Assembly (NCBI GenBank): GCA_025594325.1
Contig: JANHCV010000001.1
Span: forward strand, 3,472,001 to 3,536,000
Length of the DNA stretch: 64,000 nucleotides
Source of the DNA: Blastocladiella emersonii ATCC 22665
Lineage: Eukaryota > Fungi > Blastocladiomycota
Direction of reading: 5' to 3'
Shown: positions 53,517-63,169 of the stretch, piece by piece
Numbering within the stretch: position 1 is the first letter of the stretch
How the letters are laid out: every line of letters starts with the position of its first letter
Program-made: the position numbers and the translations under genes
Notes under the pieces: model-generated
Told to the model about the DNA's origin: nothing
Databases searched by the model: none
The model's input: only the letters and a program-made list of their open reading frames with translations

Positions 53517-54611
53517 ATCTGTGTGTCGTTGTCGTCGTCGTTTTGTATCCATGAACTAGCCCCCACTTAGCCCCTCCCCAAATCCTTTGTTCCATACTCT
53601 TCCCCTCTGTTTCTCTCAGCCTTCTATAACAATCACGTTGCAACCCACGACTCGCCCATGACCACCAAACTGAATCCTGTCGTCAGTCTGGCTTGGACGG
53701 TGGTCGCGGTCGTGGCCTCGGTGACGCGACGCTTCGCGTGCCCTCATCGTCACCAGATCCGTTTCGCTAGATCCGTTTCGCTAAACACGTAGGATTACTT
53801 CTAATTGGCTCGTGAACCTTGTGAATCGCCATAACGCAAGCGTGCTACGGCCGAACGAGCAGCGGTGTCGATGACCGCGGAAGGACCGTGGCCGTTGCCG
53901 CCGCGCAACGCATCCGTTCGCGTGCTCTGCCGGCTTGATCATCGTCACTTTAGGCGCCAAACCCTGCCCATAATCCACTGCCTTGTGTTTTAGGAGTGGT
54001 GATATGGTGGGTAAATTCACAGGAAAGGCGTACGCCTACCGAACGAGCGGCTATGGTGATGGTCGCGACGACCGCGACCATGGCCATGGCCAGCGCGTGA
54101 CGCGTCGCTTGGCGTAGTTCACTGAGGCAAAAGGTCGTACATGCCAGCGCCTTAGCGATGAACGCTCCCGTTCCAGGTCAATTTATTTACGAAGCAACAG
54201 AGACAGCTTATTTATTCATGAGGCAGGCGGAGGAAGCCCTAGCGAGCGGCATCTGGTGATGCGACGCGTGAGCGGTGACCGTGGCCATCGCGACGCGCCA
54301 TCTGCCGATCGGAAGGCCATGTGAGTGCATCTGCCGTGAGGTGCTGAGGGCGCAAGGTGGAGTTAAACGAAGGGATGCTTAATGAAGCTGAGAAACCTTT
54401 CTCAACAACATCTGGTCACTCACGAAGGGAGAACGACCAGCTATGCATCGCTCGAGCGGAAAAAGAGCGATCACACTCAGGAGTCGACACACAAGTAGAG
54501 TAGGAACAAAGACTATGAACCATTGAGTACAAAGCTCACCAGTAGCAGTGGAGGGAGCAATTCGAGCGAACAAGAAGATGGGCGACTCGATTCGACCGTC
54601 AACCGCTTCGC

Positions 54612-55445
54612 TTAGCAGCAGCCGTGGTTGATGGGCAGGATCGTCACGTCGCAGTCGTTGTTGTTGATGGGCATGATGTGCATGTCGCCGCCGTTGCCGG
54701 TGGTGCTGCAGTCGCCCGAGGGACCCCAGGTGGCGGGGTTGCCGCCAACGAAGCCGTCGGCCGAGTGGTGGCCCTGGAACTGGGTCTGCGACTGCGACTG
54801 CGACTGGAACGCGTCGCCGTGGCCGTTGGACCACTGGCCCTGCGACTGCGACTGGTGCTGCGCGGCGTCGCCGTGGCCGGTGCCCCACTGAGTCTGCGAC
54901 TGCTGCTGGGACTGCGACTGAGCACCGTGACCGCCGAACTGGGCCTGCGACTGCGACTGGGTCTGGTCGACCGAGTGATGGTTGCCCCAGTTGCCCTGGA
55001 ACTGCGACTGGGACTGCTGCTGCGCGGCGTCGCCGTGGTGGTTGCCCCAGTTGCCCTGGAACTGCGACTGCGACTGCGACTGAGCGGCGTCGCCGTGGCC
55101 GTTGCCCCACTGCGACTGGGACTGCGACTGCGACTGCTGCTGGGCACCGTGGCCGTGGCCGAACTGGGTCTGCGACTGGGACTGGGCCTGGTCGACCGAG
55201 TGGTGGCCCTGGAACTGCGACTGCGACTGCGACTGGGACTGCGACTGCACGGCGTCGCCGCCAAACTGGGACTGCGACTGCGACTGCGACTGCGACTGCT
55301 GCTGGGCGCCCGAGCCGTGGCCGAACTGGGTCTGCGACTGCGACTGCGACTGCGACTGAGCGCCGTGGCCGCCAAACTGGGCCTGCGACTGCGACTGCGA
55401 CTGGGTCTGGACGGCGGGGACGTGGATCGGGGCGCAGAAGGTCAT
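54612..55445 (-). CDS. Gln/Ser/Gly/His-rich repeat protein, copy A (277 aa)
   Basis: ATG after CACCAC..AAG leader; MTFCAPIHVP then 12 (QS)n-aromatic-Gly/His units; ends PINHGCC; strong codon bias. Confidence 0.85.
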   Translation of the reverse strand: MTFCAPIHVPAVQTQSQSQSQAQFGGHGAQSQSQSQSQTQFGHGSGAQQQSQSQSQSQSQFGGDAVQSQSQSQSQSQFQGHHSVDQAQSQSQTQFGHGHGAQQQSQSQSQSQWGNGHGDAAQSQSQSQFQGNWGNHHGDAAQQQSQSQFQGNWGNHHSVDQTQSQSQAQFGGHGAQSQSQQQSQTQWGTGHGDAAQHQSQSQGQWSNGHGDAFQSQSQSQTQFQGHHSADGFVGGNPATWGPSGDCSTTGNGGDMHIMPINNNDCDVTILPINHGCC

Positions 55446-55551
55446 CTTGGTGGTGGTGGTGGTGGTGGCAGTGTTGAGGGAGCGAGCGGTGGTCAAGAAA
55501 GCTGCTGAGGGTGCTGATCAAGTGGAAGGGGAAGCCGGGGCACGCCATGTT

Positions 55552-55557
55552 CTTATA
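55552..55557 (-). promoter_or_regulatory. Putative TATA element of copy A
   Basis: TATAAG about 110 nt upstream of ATG; mirror of 60929-60934. Confidence 0.4.
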
Positions 55558-57499
55558 CTTCTTCGCTCGTTCGTTCGCTCACCGACGATTCCGACTCGGA
55601 GTAGAGAGACGCGTCGCTAAAAATTGTCGCTCACCCCCACGAAGCCGTCGCGTCGTTTCAGCAGCGGCCGACCGACCCGTCGAGCTCGACCGCTCACCGC
55701 AAGGCGCGCAGCGGTCCGCGGTTCGGCAGCACCGACCCACACGAGTGGACTCGCTGCGGAAGCGCTGCGGATCACTGCTCGGTGTCGTGTCAAGTTCTTC
55801 AAGCCGCCGCTGCTGACGAACAGCCGAGCTAGAGCAGGTGGATGCCGTTTCCTCTCCATAGCGCAGGATGGCCCTCAGCGTGGTGTGGCGCAGGCGACGG
55901 CCGTGATCCATTCGAGTGCATTGCAGGGAGTAGGCGACTTCATGGTTGCGGGGTTGTGAGGGAGCAAGAGAGGGAGCATCGAGGTCGGTCGCCGCCAGCG
56001 AGAACCGGCCGATCAGCGCGCTGTCTCGCCCCGCTCACGTGTTTGTTCGACGCGTCTCCGCTTCTCGGGTCCGCATCCTTGCGCAGTCGAGACACGAGAC
56101 ACGAGACACGAGACGATCGAGAGAGATAGGAAAGTACGGGATGCAGTCTATTCGCACACACAGTTCACGGGCCAGCCGACGCCGGCGCTCAGTCGCACGC
56201 GTCGACGCATGGTCGCGCCCTCCCGGCCGGGCGAAACGAAACGAGAACCGACGCGTCCCCGCGCTGCTGTACGAGCAAAAGAGTCAAGTCGGAGAGAGGG
56301 GCGGAGCGTGGTGAGAAGGAGGAAGGGGGTCCCGATTAAAGGGAACTGCGACACCGCCGCCACAACGCACTACTCGGGATGCACCAAGGATGGCCGCCCC
56401 ACCGACCCCAAACGCGTCAGACCACGCAGAACACACCGCCCAAGCCGTACAGCACTCGGTGGTGCACACCGACCCTAGCCGGCCAGCAGAAAGGGTCGCA
56501 TACTCGCAGAGGTGCATGCGATTCAGCGGTCCGGCTACTCGCTAGGCGAGGTCACTGCGCGAGACGGGGAATGCAGCACATGCGTCGGAAACCCAGCTGC
56601 AGCGCGGCGCAGGAGACGATGGCGAGCCGAGGAGAGGCAAGGAAACGATGGGTATACGAGGAGGTTCGTAGGATGGACGCGCGCAAGAGGCAGTGAGGCA
56701 GCAGCCGACAGCGAGTGCGGCACACCCCGGATGCACCCGTTTTGCACGCCGCGGGTAGGCTGATACAATGGGTTGGCTTCCCGGACGGGATGCGAGGGAA
56801 ACATCAAGGAGGTGGGTAGTGGGGTGGGGGTGGGGTGGGTCGCGATGCATGAGCCGTACCAGGTGGCGATGGACACGTTACGCGCGCGCGAGCTAGACGA
56901 TGCGCGAGCGAGCGATCGGTTCGACGACGTGTACCAGCCCGCCAATGGTGGGCGAGACGAGCAGCATGTTGAGGTTGTTGATGGTCTTGATCGAGACGCG
57001 GAAGTGTGCGCGGGCGGGAGGCGAACAAGAGTTAGCGAGTAACACTCGGGATGCGGGTCGGAGGTGAGTCGTACCGAGTCCCAAAGTAGACGAAGAGTTG
57101 AGGTGCGCGACGGTCCCACCGCGAGCGCGAGTACTTCTTGAGCCGCGCGGGTACACGTGGCGCTGTTGAAGATTCGGTCGGCCGTGGTGCTCGCGGTGGT
57201 GGTTGGTGCCTCGTATCGGCGACGTGCACCAGAGTCCGACGAGAGGTGGAAGATGTGGTCGCTACACGAGGCAGCGATGTGAGCACGCGATCGGTCGACC
57301 GTGATGCGAGCAGGGCGTACGAGAGGCGAGAAACCCTTGATGATCACCGCAGACCGCCGAGAGCGTCGAGCCACGCGCGACTGTCGCCGATCAAGTGCGC
57401 GAGCGCGTGAAGGCGACTCGGCCGTCGCGTTAATGGCGAGCGAGCTGGCGGACATGGCGATAGTGGTCGAAGGTGTCGTCGAGCTCGGCAGGGCGTGTG

Positions 57500-58140
57500 G
57501 ATCGAGCCGTCGTGATGGGCGCCGCCATTCGGCGCGGGATGCGGGATGCGCGTACTGGAGCCCGCCGAGATGTCGAAGGCCGAACCACCGCTGTATTGAT
57601 GCGGAAGCCGACGAGAACACGCCGCGCGCGAGTGCGCGGGGCGACGACCGTGGCCGTACGTGGTTCGACTAGTCGCGTGGTGGCTACACGAAGCAAACTG
57701 GTGAACACGCGATTGGCTAACCACACACTGATCAGGACATACGAACGCTGAAGCGTGACCTGTGCGAGAGTGTCGAGCCGTGGACGCCGTCGACCGGGTA
57801 CGTGAGGACACGATGATGACCTGGTCGGCCTTGATGATGACGGCGGTGCTTGGCGCCGCGCATGCCGCCGCGCGTACTCGAACCCGACGAGATGGTGAGG
57901 TCGAGCCACCACTGGATCGACAACGCGGGAGCAGCCGAGAACAGGTTGCGCGCGCGCGAAGCGAAGTCACGATGCCGTGCCGTGATAGTGCTGCAGCTAC
58001 ACGAGGTCGAGGGTTGAGGAGTGAGCGCACAACCAGACGAGCACCCAGAGATCAGGTCGTACGAACGTTGAAGCCGAACTTGTTCTTGGTAGCCGTGAAC
58101 TGCGCGAGTGTCGAGCCATGGCCGCCGTCGATCAGGCGCG
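57500..58140 (-). pseudogene. Diverged tandem duplication (about 320-bp period) of an exon-intron-exon module; probable decayed gene in palindrome spacer
   Basis: GATCAGGxCxTACGAACGxTGAAGC at 57730 and 58050; GCGCGTACT..CCCG.CGAGATG at 57548 and 57870; both units have GT(A)...CGTGTAG introns on the minus strand; frames broken. Confidence 0.5.
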
Positions 58141-60928
58141 CGAGAGCGTGATCTCGCCGAGCTTGTCGCCGAGCATGTCCGGGCGATCAGGTCGATCCGT
58201 CACGACGGCCACGAACACGCCACGGCGGCCGCGAGCATGATGCGGTGGCCACGATCATGGTGCGGGCGAGACGAGAGAGGAGGAGAGGAGCAAGATGAGG
58301 AAGATCGAGTTCTACACAAGAGTTACGAGCGGGATGACAGGAGGATAACAAACGGGAGTCAGCAACATGCGAGACATCACGCGGGCGGCGCGTGCACGCC
58401 AGGATTGACGTGTGCGTTCTCGTACAAAAATTTGAGCATCATGTTGGGTTTCTACCTGGTGTCAATAATCGTACTGGAATCGGCTTGGATTGTGGAGAGC
58501 GAACGTGTTGCTTACACCACGTGACCAGTTGCTGAGTGCTTTTGACTTCGTCACCGCCTCGCCAGTCGCTGCTCTCTCACGTACCACTGATGTCGAAGAT
58601 GATTATCCTCGAGTCTATGAAACATATGCACAAACACTCCGGGAACTAGCTGCAACGACGTCTCCGCATCTGCTACGCCCGTTTTGACTGTTACCGTTGG
58701 TTGCCATCATCTCGCCTGTGAGCAGCAGCACGGCGCGCTAGACCATGTCAAGCGTAGCGATCTCACCGCTCCAGATGTGCCACCCGTACCCACTCGGCTA
58801 CATCTGGGCCGACTTGCGTGAGCATCGCCACATCACCGACCTGCGTCATCCGCGAGCCACGCGCGTCCCGCCTGCATCGTCTTCATCATGCATGATCCTA
58901 TCATCGTATAGAGAAGGTTTGGAGCAGACAGCGAGTGGGGCGAGACGGGGCAGCCGCGTCAACGAGTTCTGCTTCGCTCTCGGGCTCGTGCGGCTCGGTG
59001 GCCAAGTAGCGCGTGCAACGGCCCGTACTACCCCTTCGGCCACGGAACCGCTGAAGGTCCGGTCGGCATTTTGCTCCATGTGCCTCCGGGCTGGACACTC
59101 CCGCCGTCTGATAACGGCGACCTCGTGTAGAGCGCGAGTCGCGCGGGGACAAACGCGTCGCGCGACGCGGCTCCTGCGGGTGCAACGTGATCGGCGCCCA
59201 CGCCTGTGCTCGATGTGGTCCGCGCTCCGCCGACGATCACCGCTGGTACGCTATCGTTGTCCCCACCCTCGATGCCCGATCCGCGCTCACCGCACATGAC
59301 TACATGCAACAGAACTCGCGCCGTGACGGCTCATGGAACTCGAACGTAATACATGGGAGCAACCCGCTCTGCTTCTCCCCGAACGCGCCACATCTCGCCT
59401 GAGTCGACCGGACCCGCCTTGGGTCTCGTTTTTGGAGCGGTGTACCGATCCCGATCGATCTTCTTCTACGACATGCGTCTGTCCGCGCCAGCGTAAGGCG
59501 GCACCGCCTCCTCGGCCGGGCTCGCACCAGTTGTGCGCCCAACAGCGACGAGTACACCCTTCGTACCGCGTCAGAGGCCCGCCATCTTCCTCGCGTCTAT
59601 GTCAGCGACGCAAGCACGGGCCCAGAGCAACGGTGGCGCTGATCTGGTATCAAGGGCGGTAGAGTGCGAGAAGGGTCCGTTGTCGTCGAACGCGTCGAGG
59701 CCATCTTAACCGGCCTCAAGGCGCTCAGGACGCGCTCACGGACTCTCGGGCTTGTTAACCACTCTTCTCGATCACAAGCCCTGGAAATGTCACAATCCGG
59801 CCATGATACGCACGCTACGAACCTCCTCGTATACCCATCGTTTCCTTGCCTCTCCTCGGCTCGCCATCGTCTCCTGCGCCGCGCTGCAGCTGGGTTTCCG
59901 ACGCATGTGCTGCATTCCCCGTCTCGCGCAGTGACCTCGCCTAGCGAGTAGCCGGACCGCTGAATCGCATGCACCTCTGCGAGTATGCGACCCTTTCTGC
60001 TGGCCGGCTAGGGTCGGTGTGCACCACCGAGTGCTGTACGGCTTGGGCGGTGTGTTCTGCGTGGTCTGACGCGTTTGGGGTCGGTGGGGCGGCCATCCTT
60101 GGTGCATCCCGAGTAGTGCGTTGTGGCGGCGGTGTCGCAGTTCCCTTTAATCGGGACCCCCTTCCTCCTTCTCACCACGCTCCGCCCCTCTCTCCGACTT
60201 GACTCTTTTGCTCGTACAGCAGCGCGGGGACGCGTCGGTTCTCGTTTCGTTTCGCCCGGCCGGGAGGGCGCGACCATGCGTCGACGCGTGCGACTGAGCG
60301 CCGGCGTCGGCTGGCCCGTGAACTGTGTGTGCGAATAGACTGCATCCCGTACTTTCCTATCTCTCTCGATCGTCTCGTGTCTCGTGTCTCGTGTCTCGAC
60401 TGCGCAAGGATGCGGACCCGAGAAGCGGAGACGCGTCGAACAAACACGTGAGCGGGGCGAGACAGCGCGCTGATCGGCCGGTTCTCGCTGGCGGCGACCG
60501 ACCTCGATGCTCCCTCTCTTGCTCCCTCACAACCCCGCAACCATGAAGTCGCCTACTCCCTGCAATGCACTCGAATGGATCACGGCCGTCGCCTGCGCCA
60601 CACCACGCTGAGGGCCATCCTGCGCTATGGAGAGGAAACGGCATCCACCTGCTCTAGCTCGGCTGTTCGTCAGCAGCGGCGGCTTGAAGAACTTGACACG
60701 ACACCGAGCAGTGATCCGCAGCGCTTCCGCAGCGAGTCCACTCGTGTGGGTCGGTGCTGCCGAACCGCGGACCGCTGCGCGCCTTGCGGTGAGCGGTCGA
60801 GCTCGACGGGTCGGTCGGCCGCTGCTGAAACGACGCGACGGCTTCGTGGGGGTGAGCGACAATTTTTAGCGACGCGTCTCTCTACTCCGAGTCGGAATCG
60901 TCGGTGAGCGAACGAACGAGCGAAGAAG

Positions 60929-60934
60929 TATAAG
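60929..60934 (+). promoter_or_regulatory. Putative TATA element of copy B
   Basis: TATAAG about 110 nt upstream of ATG 61041. Confidence 0.4.
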
Positions 60935-61040
60935 AACATGGCGTGCCCCGGCTTCCCCTTCCACTTGATCAGCACCCTCAGCAGCTTTCTTGACCACCGC
61001 TCGCTCCCTCAACACTGCCACCACCACCACCACCACCAAG

Positions 61041-61874
61041 ATGACCTTCTGCGCCCCGATCCACGTCCCCGCCGTCCAGACCCAGTCGCAGTCGCAGTCG
61101 CAGGCCCAGTTTGGCGGCCACGGCGCTCAGTCGCAGTCGCAGTCGCAGTCGCAGACCCAGTTCGGCCACGGCTCGGGCGCCCAGCAGCAGTCGCAGTCGC
61201 AGTCGCAGTCGCAGTCCCAGTTTGGCGGCGACGCCGTGCAGTCGCAGTCCCAGTCGCAGTCGCAGTCGCAGTTCCAGGGCCACCACTCGGTCGACCAGGC
61301 CCAGTCCCAGTCGCAGACCCAGTTCGGCCACGGCCACGGTGCCCAGCAGCAGTCGCAGTCGCAGTCCCAGTCGCAGTGGGGCAACGGCCACGGCGACGCC
61401 GCTCAGTCGCAGTCGCAGTCGCAGTTCCAGGGCAACTGGGGCAACCACCACGGCGACGCCGCGCAGCAGCAGTCCCAGTCGCAGTTCCAGGGCAACTGGG
61501 GCAACCATCACTCGGTCGACCAGACCCAGTCGCAGTCGCAGGCCCAGTTCGGCGGTCACGGTGCTCAGTCGCAGTCCCAGCAGCAGTCGCAGACTCAGTG
61601 GGGCACCGGCCACGGCGACGCCGCGCAGCACCAGTCGCAGTCGCAGGGCCAGTGGTCCAACGGCCACGGCGACGCGTTCCAGTCGCAGTCGCAGTCGCAG
61701 ACCCAGTTCCAGGGCCACCACTCGGCCGACGGCTTCGTTGGCGGCAACCCCGCCACCTGGGGTCCCTCGGGCGACTGCAGCACCACCGGCAACGGCGGCG
61801 ACATGCACATCATGCCCATCAACAACAACGACTGCGACGTGACGATCCTGCCCATCAACCACGGCTGCTGCTAA
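61041..61874 (+). CDS. Gln/Ser/Gly/His-rich repeat protein, copy B (277 aa, identical to copy A)
   Basis: Same translation as 54612-55445. Confidence 0.85.
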   Translation: MTFCAPIHVPAVQTQSQSQSQAQFGGHGAQSQSQSQSQTQFGHGSGAQQQSQSQSQSQSQFGGDAVQSQSQSQSQSQFQGHHSVDQAQSQSQTQFGHGHGAQQQSQSQSQSQWGNGHGDAAQSQSQSQFQGNWGNHHGDAAQQQSQSQFQGNWGNHHSVDQTQSQSQAQFGGHGAQSQSQQQSQTQWGTGHGDAAQHQSQSQGQWSNGHGDAFQSQSQSQTQFQGHHSADGFVGGNPATWGPSGDCSTTGNGGDMHIMPINNNDCDVTILPINHGCC

Positions 61875-63169
61875 GCGAAGCGGTTGACGGTCGAATCGAG
61901 TCGCCCATCTTCTTGTTCGCTCGAATTGCTCCCTCCACTGCTACTGGTGAGCTTTGTACTCAATAGTTTATCGTATTTATCTTCTATCTGCCCCCGTCTC
62001 TTCCTGAATCCTGCCTCCGTTTGATCGACGCGTCGCGCGTGGGTTTCGCACGCAACAGCAGCCGCATGAGTTGCGAATGGGTCAGGCTTCCTGGGTGTGC
62101 GCGCCACGCTGCCTTAATTCCTTCGACCAACATCTCGTCATTCTTTTTGTGCGTTAGGTTTTTATCATTTCGTGCAGTCGGTCGTGATCGCCGCGATTTT
62201 GAGCGGCGCGCGCGATGGCCACGGCCGCGAAATCCTTTTCGCTCAAACAAGATGTGACCCTGTTCCACATGCTCGCTCAGCGTATCGAACACCCACCAGT
62301 TAGTGACGTGCTTAGCGTGAAAACCTTCAAGTTACAGAGGAACTTGAAGTTCGAAGCGATGCGCCGCGCGTTTGCCATGGCCACGGTCGCAGCGCGCCGC
62401 CATCACCAAGGTCGCTTGGTTGGCCGTCGTTCGTCTGCTCAATGAATGAAAGCCTGATCCCGCTGCTGCTCACACATGTTAGTAGTGCTTCGGCACCGTT
62501 TAGCGGTATCGCGCCCAATGGGATGGCGATCGAGCTGGCAAAGAGTGCGAATCGACTCGTTGCGCGATGCGCCACAGTCACCGTCCCACCGCGGCCATCA
62601 CTACCGCTGTTTGCTGGGTTGTGGCTAGCCTGCCTGATGGTGAAAAACCTGCGCATGTTGCTTCTTAGAAGGTTTACAACTATATCAGAGGCGATCCTAC
62701 CGCTTGGCATCAACCCAAGGTCGACCCCGCTTGGCCTCGACAGCAACTACATGCATCAATTTTCTTGCTGCAGAATCGCGCTTAGCCCGCTCGAGGTGAC
62801 TCGTCTCGCTTTCAAGGCCCGGACCTTCGGCCCTGCTTCAGAGGATGCGACATGAAATATGTGCGATCTCATGTTATTGGGCTCCAAGCCCTTCCACAGA
62901 GCCTGGAGTCCTTGGGGGCCTCCCTTGACGCCGTCCTCAAACAGATTTTCCGTCCGGCGATCTCAGAAGCACCTTTTACGACAAGTTACGCATCGTGTAC
63001 AACCAGATCTCATCGCAGGATCGCTCATCCAACAGTCTCGGCTGTGGCCGTTCGCGCGGATCAGCTGAACTGGCCTCACGTGTCTCGAGTCGTCCCTGCA
63101 GCTCCTCATCGTCCGTTCGCTCTATCCACGCGCTCCTTCTGCATCAAGTTCCATGGTGGCGCAGCGCAT

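Follow-up and report, generated by a model that had tools for sequence, protein, structure and literature searches.

A 64-kb stretch of the genome of the zoosporic fungus Blastocladiella emersonii (strain ATCC 22665), taken from contig JANHCV010000001.1 of assembly GCA_025594325.1 and referred to below as the window, contains a 7.4-kb palindrome: two inverted arms of 2,150 nucleotides (nt), each with a complete copy of the same glutamine/serine-repeat (Q/S-repeat) gene, flank a spacer of 3,143 nt in which no gene is apparent. The two arms are perfect reverse complements of each other and both are present in the sequencing reads, and mirrored homology of a much more diverged kind continues outside them. 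We suggest, with a probability of roughly 0.62, that this arrangement descends from an old inverted duplication whose gene-bearing core has recently been homogenised by arm-to-arm gene conversion.

Two identical arms, in the assembly and in the reads

In window coordinates, to which 3,472,000 is added to obtain coordinates on JANHCV010000001.1, the palindrome has three parts:

54522..56671 (minus strand): arm A, consisting of 90 nt of 3' flank, the Q/S-repeat coding sequence (CDS) and 1,226 nt of upstream DNA; exact reverse complement of 59815-61964, with about twofold depth
59815..61964 (plus strand): arm B, the mirror of arm A; exact match, with the right-flank/arm and arm/right-spacer-end joints present in read contigs
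56672..59814 (no strand): spacer, 3,143 nt, single-copy and apparently non-coding; no coding signal, no annotated gene

Compared base by base, the arms agree at 2,150 of 2,150 nt, with 0 mismatches, and an inverted match of this kind is beyond chance. A repeat search returned the same pair as the dominant inverted repeat, albeit in a slightly longer version (54508-56671 versus 59815-61978, 2,164 nt at a rounded "100%"), because the next 14 nt beyond the outer arm ends still match at 10 of 14 positions. Thereafter positional agreement is at background, and at the inner ends identity is lost immediately. Both comparisons therefore bear out the exact inverted arms that a first-pass annotation of the window had claimed, and identity does end as sharply as it had stated, at once on the inner side and across 14 nt on the outer. 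No third copy of the arm was found within the 64-kb window. The palindrome sits at about 3,526,522-3,533,964 of the 5.14-Mb contig, far from the contig ends, and its two genes diverge, head to head, with their 5' ends toward the spacer.

To judge whether both arms exist outside the assembly, we relied on Logan contigs (k=31) from four public runs (X1-X4), all derived from one sample of one strain, which were placed on 53815-59814. This interval contains one arm only, so that both copies pile up there. Note that contigs rather than reads were placed, and that contigs built at k=31 collapse at arms of 2,150 nt. Even so, three of the four junction types are seen in the contigs of the four runs. 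In X1 and X2 the left-flank contig enters the arm by 30 nt and stops at 54551 (arm start plus k-1), marking a branch of the k=31 graph at the joint between left flank and arm. A contig of X4 spans 54508-54637 and carries precisely the four mismatches of the outer end, and its 47 loose letters are those of the right flank, matching the window at 61979 on the minus strand; it therefore represents the junction between right flank and arm B. Finally, in each of X1, X2 and X3 one contig links 56671 on one strand with 59814 on the other, and this joint is therefore the one between arm B and the right spacer end.

Depth over the arms, which the first-pass annotation had proposed to examine, is about twice that of unique sequence in the contigs of the read sets. 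Unique sequence has a depth of about 40-43 in X1, 112-128 in X2 and 5.5-6.6 in X3, compared with 82-94, 343-350 and 10.7-11.9, respectively, for arm unitigs (55423-56039). A mixed contig comprising 641 nt of arm and 498 nt of spacer has a depth of 55.4 (X1) and 174.7 (X2), where a twofold arm and a onefold spacer would be expected to yield ~63-68 and 175-200. In addition, variant letters are absent from X2 across the 1.25 kb of non-repetitive arm DNA, so that the arm copies are identical in the reads too, and because the flanks hold different genes (ABCF on the left, TRM1 on the right) the structure is not a haplotype fold-back. Neither a single copy nor a pair of copies homogenised in polishing, the possibilities that the first-pass annotation had raised against its own claim, is indicated by this combination of junctions, doubled depth and absence of variants in X2. 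We conclude that both arms really are in the genome and that a fold-back or polishing artefact is unlikely. The linker letters in X4 are of loxP type and presumably represent the 454 paired-end linker, and X2, from 2022, is probably a high-fidelity (HiFi) run; in that event the palindrome would be backed by more than one sequencing technology. The mean HiFi read of the B. emersonii assembly measures 10.5 kb (PMC9730499), more than the 7.4 kb of the entire structure.

A separate set of observations concerns the non-repetitive upstream DNA of the arm, inside which the read contigs branch at 55685/55714, at 56018-56066 and at 56327. Between 55423 and 56400 they contain loose ends along with two alternative paths that replace 55715-56009, and the letters of these pieces occur neither in the 64-kb window nor in three regions (L001-L003) that hold other members of the gene family. 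Unitigs of X2 at 55423-55930 have near threefold depth. Given these branch points and alternative paths, along with the X2 depth, the reads appear to contain at least one further copy of the promoter-plus-gene cassette, at 95-99% identity. This copy may be missing from the final assembly, since 226 of 247 contigs were dropped during assembly.

Diverged homology outside the arms and the origin of the palindrome

If the palindrome consisted of nothing but a fresh copy of 2,150 nt, we would not expect the sequence beyond its arms to be related. Two stretches outside the arms nevertheless mirror each other:

53826..54299 (no strand): left outer flank, putative diverged remnant of an older inverted duplication, with degenerate modules of ~186 nt; mirrored in-register matches to 62205-62643
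62205..62643 (no strand): right outer flank, mirror counterpart of 53826-54299; mirrored in-register matches

Individual matches pair 53826-53963 with 62643-62505 (68% over 139 nt, E 8e-10), 54046-54110 with 62416-62354 (78% over 65 nt, E 3e-9) and 54279-54299 with 62224-62205 (95% over 21 nt), and their distances from the two arm ends agree to ~20 nt. Mirrored homology thus spans ~220-700 nt outside both arms, averaging ~74% identity. When local alignments of the mirrored flanks were set against 300 shuffles, we obtained z = 22 for the segment 380-720 nt out and z = 7.5 for the segment 120-400 nt out, as opposed to z ~3 for same-strand controls. The sequence involved is intergenic and lies downstream of arm A, where three to four degenerate tandem modules of ~186 nt occupy 53700-54300; their mirrors lie downstream of arm B. 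Mirror counterparts are far more alike than are the modules within one flank (E 0.01 to 0.1), and the modules were not found elsewhere in the 127 kb of genome searched. At the divergence of the flanks, ~560 differences would be expected per 2,150 nt, yet 0 are observed in the arms. Recent arm-to-arm conversion covering the gene and its promoter is the simplest account of this discrepancy.

The scenario we favour has two steps. Long ago an inverted duplication would have arisen whose arms each measured 2.85 kb or more and extended to 53826 or beyond on the left and to 62643 or beyond on the right; recently, non-allelic, arm-to-arm gene conversion within the chromosome would have equalised the inner, gene-bearing 2,150 nt of each arm. 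The outer ends of the conversion tract would then lie 90 nt past the stop codons and its inner ends would coincide with the limit of detectable homology. The outcome would be a lineage-specific Gln/Ser-repeat gene in two identical, divergently oriented copies, both preceded by 1.2 kb of upstream DNA of their own. Crossing over between the arms would invert the spacer as a passive by-product rather than as a switch. The first-pass annotation had offered either a very recent inverted duplication or conversion that maintains a dosage-critical gene: the structure it described is real, and the mirrored flank homology favours conversion acting on an older duplication, but the role it proposed for dosage finds no support.

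Several points weigh against this scenario. The first 120-220 nt outside each arm lack detectable homology (z = -1), whereas a simple conversion boundary should drop straight to ~70% identity. The ~186-nt modules, surveyed in 127 kb only, could belong to a dispersed repeat family, and the further near-identical cassette suggested by the reads may imply a history with more than two partners. Moreover, the comparison of the arms rests on one isolate of one species, every read set derives from a single strain and sample, which probably also supplied the assembly, and the junction between arm A and the left spacer end is absent among the contig pieces listed. GC content, at 63.5% in the arm upstream DNA, 62.3% in the spacer and 55.5-56% in the outer flanks, shows no GC-biased conversion signature specific to the arms and is not decisive.

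Other histories might produce the same arrangement. A 2.15-kb cassette could have undergone inverted duplication very recently, possibly within 70 years of laboratory culture, so that no conversion would be needed to explain 0 differences in 2,150 nt, repeats included. The sharp inner ends, the lack of mirrored homology between the spacer ends and the homology-free 120-220 nt outside the arms all fit such an event, and the gene family has expanded by segmental duplication elsewhere (in L002 and L003, see below). What a fresh 2,150-nt copy does not predict is diverged, in-register homology 220-700 nt outside both arms, and we therefore consider this history possible but rather unlikely. Far less likely still is that assembly or polishing created the palindrome, be it from one copy, from two diverged copies homogenised by Pilon or from a chimeric fold-back. 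Palindromes reported in other genomes have sometimes turned out to be artefacts, and here all reads come from one sample. Post-processing was also heavy, with 247 contigs reduced to 21 and then polished by Pilon with 65-nt reads (PMC9730499). Against this stand the three junction types and the ~2x arm depth in contigs of four runs, the absence of variant paths from the non-repetitive arm DNA in X2, the different genes in the two flanks, and a total length below that of the mean HiFi read.

We attach even less weight to two scenarios in which the palindrome would be a mobile or switchable element. Identical inverted repeats around a unique segment between two divergent promoters are reminiscent of a programmed invertible (flip-flop) segment, inversion of the spacer then regulating one or both genes. 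However, the spacer holds no recombinase, coding signal or Pfam domain, the neighbouring genes are ABCF and TRM1, and inversion would alter distal sequence only, the 1.2 kb upstream of each gene being part of the arm. A recombinase-driven switch was rejected as unsupported, there being no recombinase gene inside or adjoining the segment. Just as improbable is a foldback-type or composite transposable element with terminal inverted repeats of 2.15 kb. The locus does resemble foldback elements in its long terminal inverted repeats with tandem repeats inside, and the reads hint at further cassette copies, but no target-site duplication is seen (the left flank ending in CTATGAACC, the right one beginning with AGTTTATCG), there is no transposase, and the supposed terminal repeat consists of a host gene, annotated and codon-optimised, together with its promoter. 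Furthermore, only two places encode the exact protein, and the other family members that were fetched share no flank DNA. Lacking both target-site duplication and transposase, and with arms that are a host gene, the palindrome was not retained as a transposon.

The Q/S-repeat gene, its family and the spacer

Within the arms we distinguish the following features:

54612..55445 (minus strand): Q/S-repeat gene copy A, 277 amino acids (aa), single exon; annotated in GCA_025594325.1
61041..61874 (plus strand): Q/S-repeat gene copy B, identical 277 aa, single exon; annotated in GCA_025594325.1
55552..55557 (minus strand), mirrored at 60929-60934 (plus strand): TATAAG, putative promoter element 112 nt before the ATG; read from the sequence
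56088..56114 in arm A, mirrored at 60372-60398 in arm B: (CGAGACA)x3.9 microsatellite

Each arm is made up of a CDS of 834 nt, 1,226 nt of upstream DNA and 90 nt after the stop codon, and its contents (CDS, ~1.2 kb of upstream DNA with a TATA-like element, ~90 nt downstream, genes diverging) are all as previously described. The GCA_025594325.1 annotation calls no genes in the upstream DNA of the arms, and neither arms nor spacer contain a transfer RNA or a non-coding RNA with an Rfam match at E up to 0.1. The CDS is built from degenerate 54/60-nt units that encode Q-S-Q-S-Q-S-Q-x-Q-(F/W) and then Gly/His-rich turns. GC content at third codon positions (GC3) is 0.96 and the codon-usage score 0.37 per codon, both in the Q/S frame only, with GC3 at least equal to that of neighbouring housekeeping genes. 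Judged by these statistics, the open reading frame (ORF) is a real coding gene, and its extreme codon bias, the sole pointer in this direction, hints at high expression. Microsatellite and hexamer/54-nt coding repeats are the same in both arms, as the first-pass annotation had noted of these slippage-prone tracts; since the arrays are short, with only 27-29 nt of pure repeat, their identity is nonetheless less remarkable than it had implied.

At 55011 (mirror 61475), within the 54/60-nt coding repeats, most read contigs carry C where the assembly has G. This disagreement probably reflects off-register or paralogous contigs, with a consensus error as a further candidate.

The exact 277-aa protein is encoded at only two places in the sequence collection, both of them on JANHCV010000001.1. 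It matched no Pfam family, its AlphaFold model, computed from an alignment of four sequences, is unusable (pLDDT, the predicted local distance difference test score, is 38.7), and an Atlas search returned only hornerin-like low-complexity look-alikes with scores <=0.75. An exhaustive HMMER search of 1.84 billion representatives yielded three matches, namely P0001 and P0002, both from B. emersonii, and a marine metatranscriptome protein that has nothing but Q/S repeats in common with the query. A word-indexed search added P0006, again from B. emersonii. Across both searches there were two matches outside B. emersonii, both low-complexity marine hits, and the family proper would, among the matches found, be confined to this species. 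Although two identical copies could in principle confer a gene-dosage benefit, the claim that the gene is dosage-critical is thus unsupported for a family that is restricted to B. emersonii among the matches and without known function.

How do family members behave outside the palindrome? The loci of P0001, P0002 and P0006 resemble the arms in the CDS alone, at 70-77% nucleotide identity and with no similarity in the flanks. The number of repeats differs among members (153, 168 and 277 aa), with conservation across the family at the N-terminus (MTFCAPIHVP) and in the C-terminal region. With CDS identity this low and repeat number this variable, the family evidently diverges when it is not homogenised. 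P0001 is a 428-aa model (L001:10001-11955, on JANHCV010000001.1 at ~4.84 Mb) whose last ~145 residues begin with the family N-terminus, following 283 aa that are unrelated; it looks like a merged gene model. The shorter members P0002 (153 aa) and P0006 (168 aa) are carried by a segmental duplication of several kb (L002:5460-12373 and L003:7277-11906), the two copies of which lie ~970 kb apart on opposite strands of JANHCV010000004.1. At 77-85% identity, this duplication would seem to be comparatively old. Overall, the locus points to a B. emersonii-restricted Gln/Ser/Gly/His repeat protein family with at least five loci and extreme codon bias, the copy number of which may be undercounted in the purged assembly.

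The annotated gene order around the palindrome is ABCF ATPase (597 aa, plus strand), 277-aa hypothetical protein (minus strand), identical 277-aa protein (plus strand), TRM1 (540 aa, plus strand), small GTPase and dynein heavy chain. A para-aminobenzoate synthase ORF in the neighbourhood matches a protein of B. emersonii ATCC 22665 at 96%.

The spacer is empty of recognisable features of this kind: it contains no stop-free segment that combines GC3 >=0.85 with a clearly positive codon score, GCA_025594325.1 annotates no gene in it, its 10 ORFs hold no Pfam domain, and a slice alignment test revealed no mirrored similarity between its ends. Diverged direct repeats with a period of ~320-340 nt and 75-82% identity occupy 57548-58144. 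We considered that they might be a decayed repeat-domain gene or exon-intron modules and rejected the idea, codon statistics giving no coding support. GC content dips to 0.53-0.54 at ~58250-58750, compared with about 0.64 around it; no other part of the spacer is clearly low in GC. Summed contig depth rises to 2-3x at 59016-59414 and at 56672-56773, within otherwise "unique" spacer, and at position 59219 two paths (T/C) occur, both of them close to single-copy depth. Some short part of the spacer probably recurs elsewhere in the genome. Crossing over between the arms, which is mechanistically possible, would invert the whole 3.1 kb. Such an inversion would shift distal non-coding DNA only, as the 1.2 kb upstream of each gene lies within the arm, and would probably change nothing.

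Relation to known palindromes

Viewed in isolation, the locus is a small and unremarkable case of a known kind of structure, the inverted segmental duplication with homogenised arms. It is, however, a compact case, with one gene per arm, an empty spacer and a total length below that of a HiFi read, and for this reason the limits of the conversion tract, the orientation of the spacer and copy number could be read directly from existing long reads. The B. emersonii genome paper makes no mention of palindromes or inverted repeats (PMC9730499). One broader idea, which we put forward tentatively and consider doubtful, is that B. emersonii keeps gene-bearing palindromes identical throughout its genome by frequent arm-to-arm conversion. 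If this were true, we would be looking at an autosomal fungal counterpart of the Y-chromosome strategy, one that preserves or doubles genes without meiotic exchange, and the 7.4-kb locus, with one gene and promoter per arm, would be its minimal unit. To our knowledge, no sexual cycle has been described for B. emersonii.

In mammals, gene-bearing palindromes of the Y and X chromosomes (P1-P8 and the X palindromes) are reported to be kept >99.9% identical by arm-to-arm conversion (PMC3723533, PMC8981503, PMC4233959). The B. emersonii locus differs from them in several respects: it is 10 to 1,000 times smaller, with arms of 2.15 kb, it is internal to an ordinary large fungal contig rather than located on a sex chromosome, and conversion is here deduced from one genome in which no arm-specific GC-biased signature was seen. 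What it shares with them is near-perfect inverted arms around a unique spacer, intact genes inside the arms, microsatellites that are the same in both arms and a spacer that crossovers could invert; if the duplication is as old as we propose, arm identity would also exceed what its age allows. A second parallel is closer to home. In Candida albicans and other fungi, long inverted repeats mediate inversions and copy-number change. The likeness of the B. emersonii locus to them is one of sequence architecture: both are kilobase-scale, highly identical, ORF-containing inverted repeats on ordinary fungal chromosomes, and repeats of this sort are substrates of mitotic recombination.

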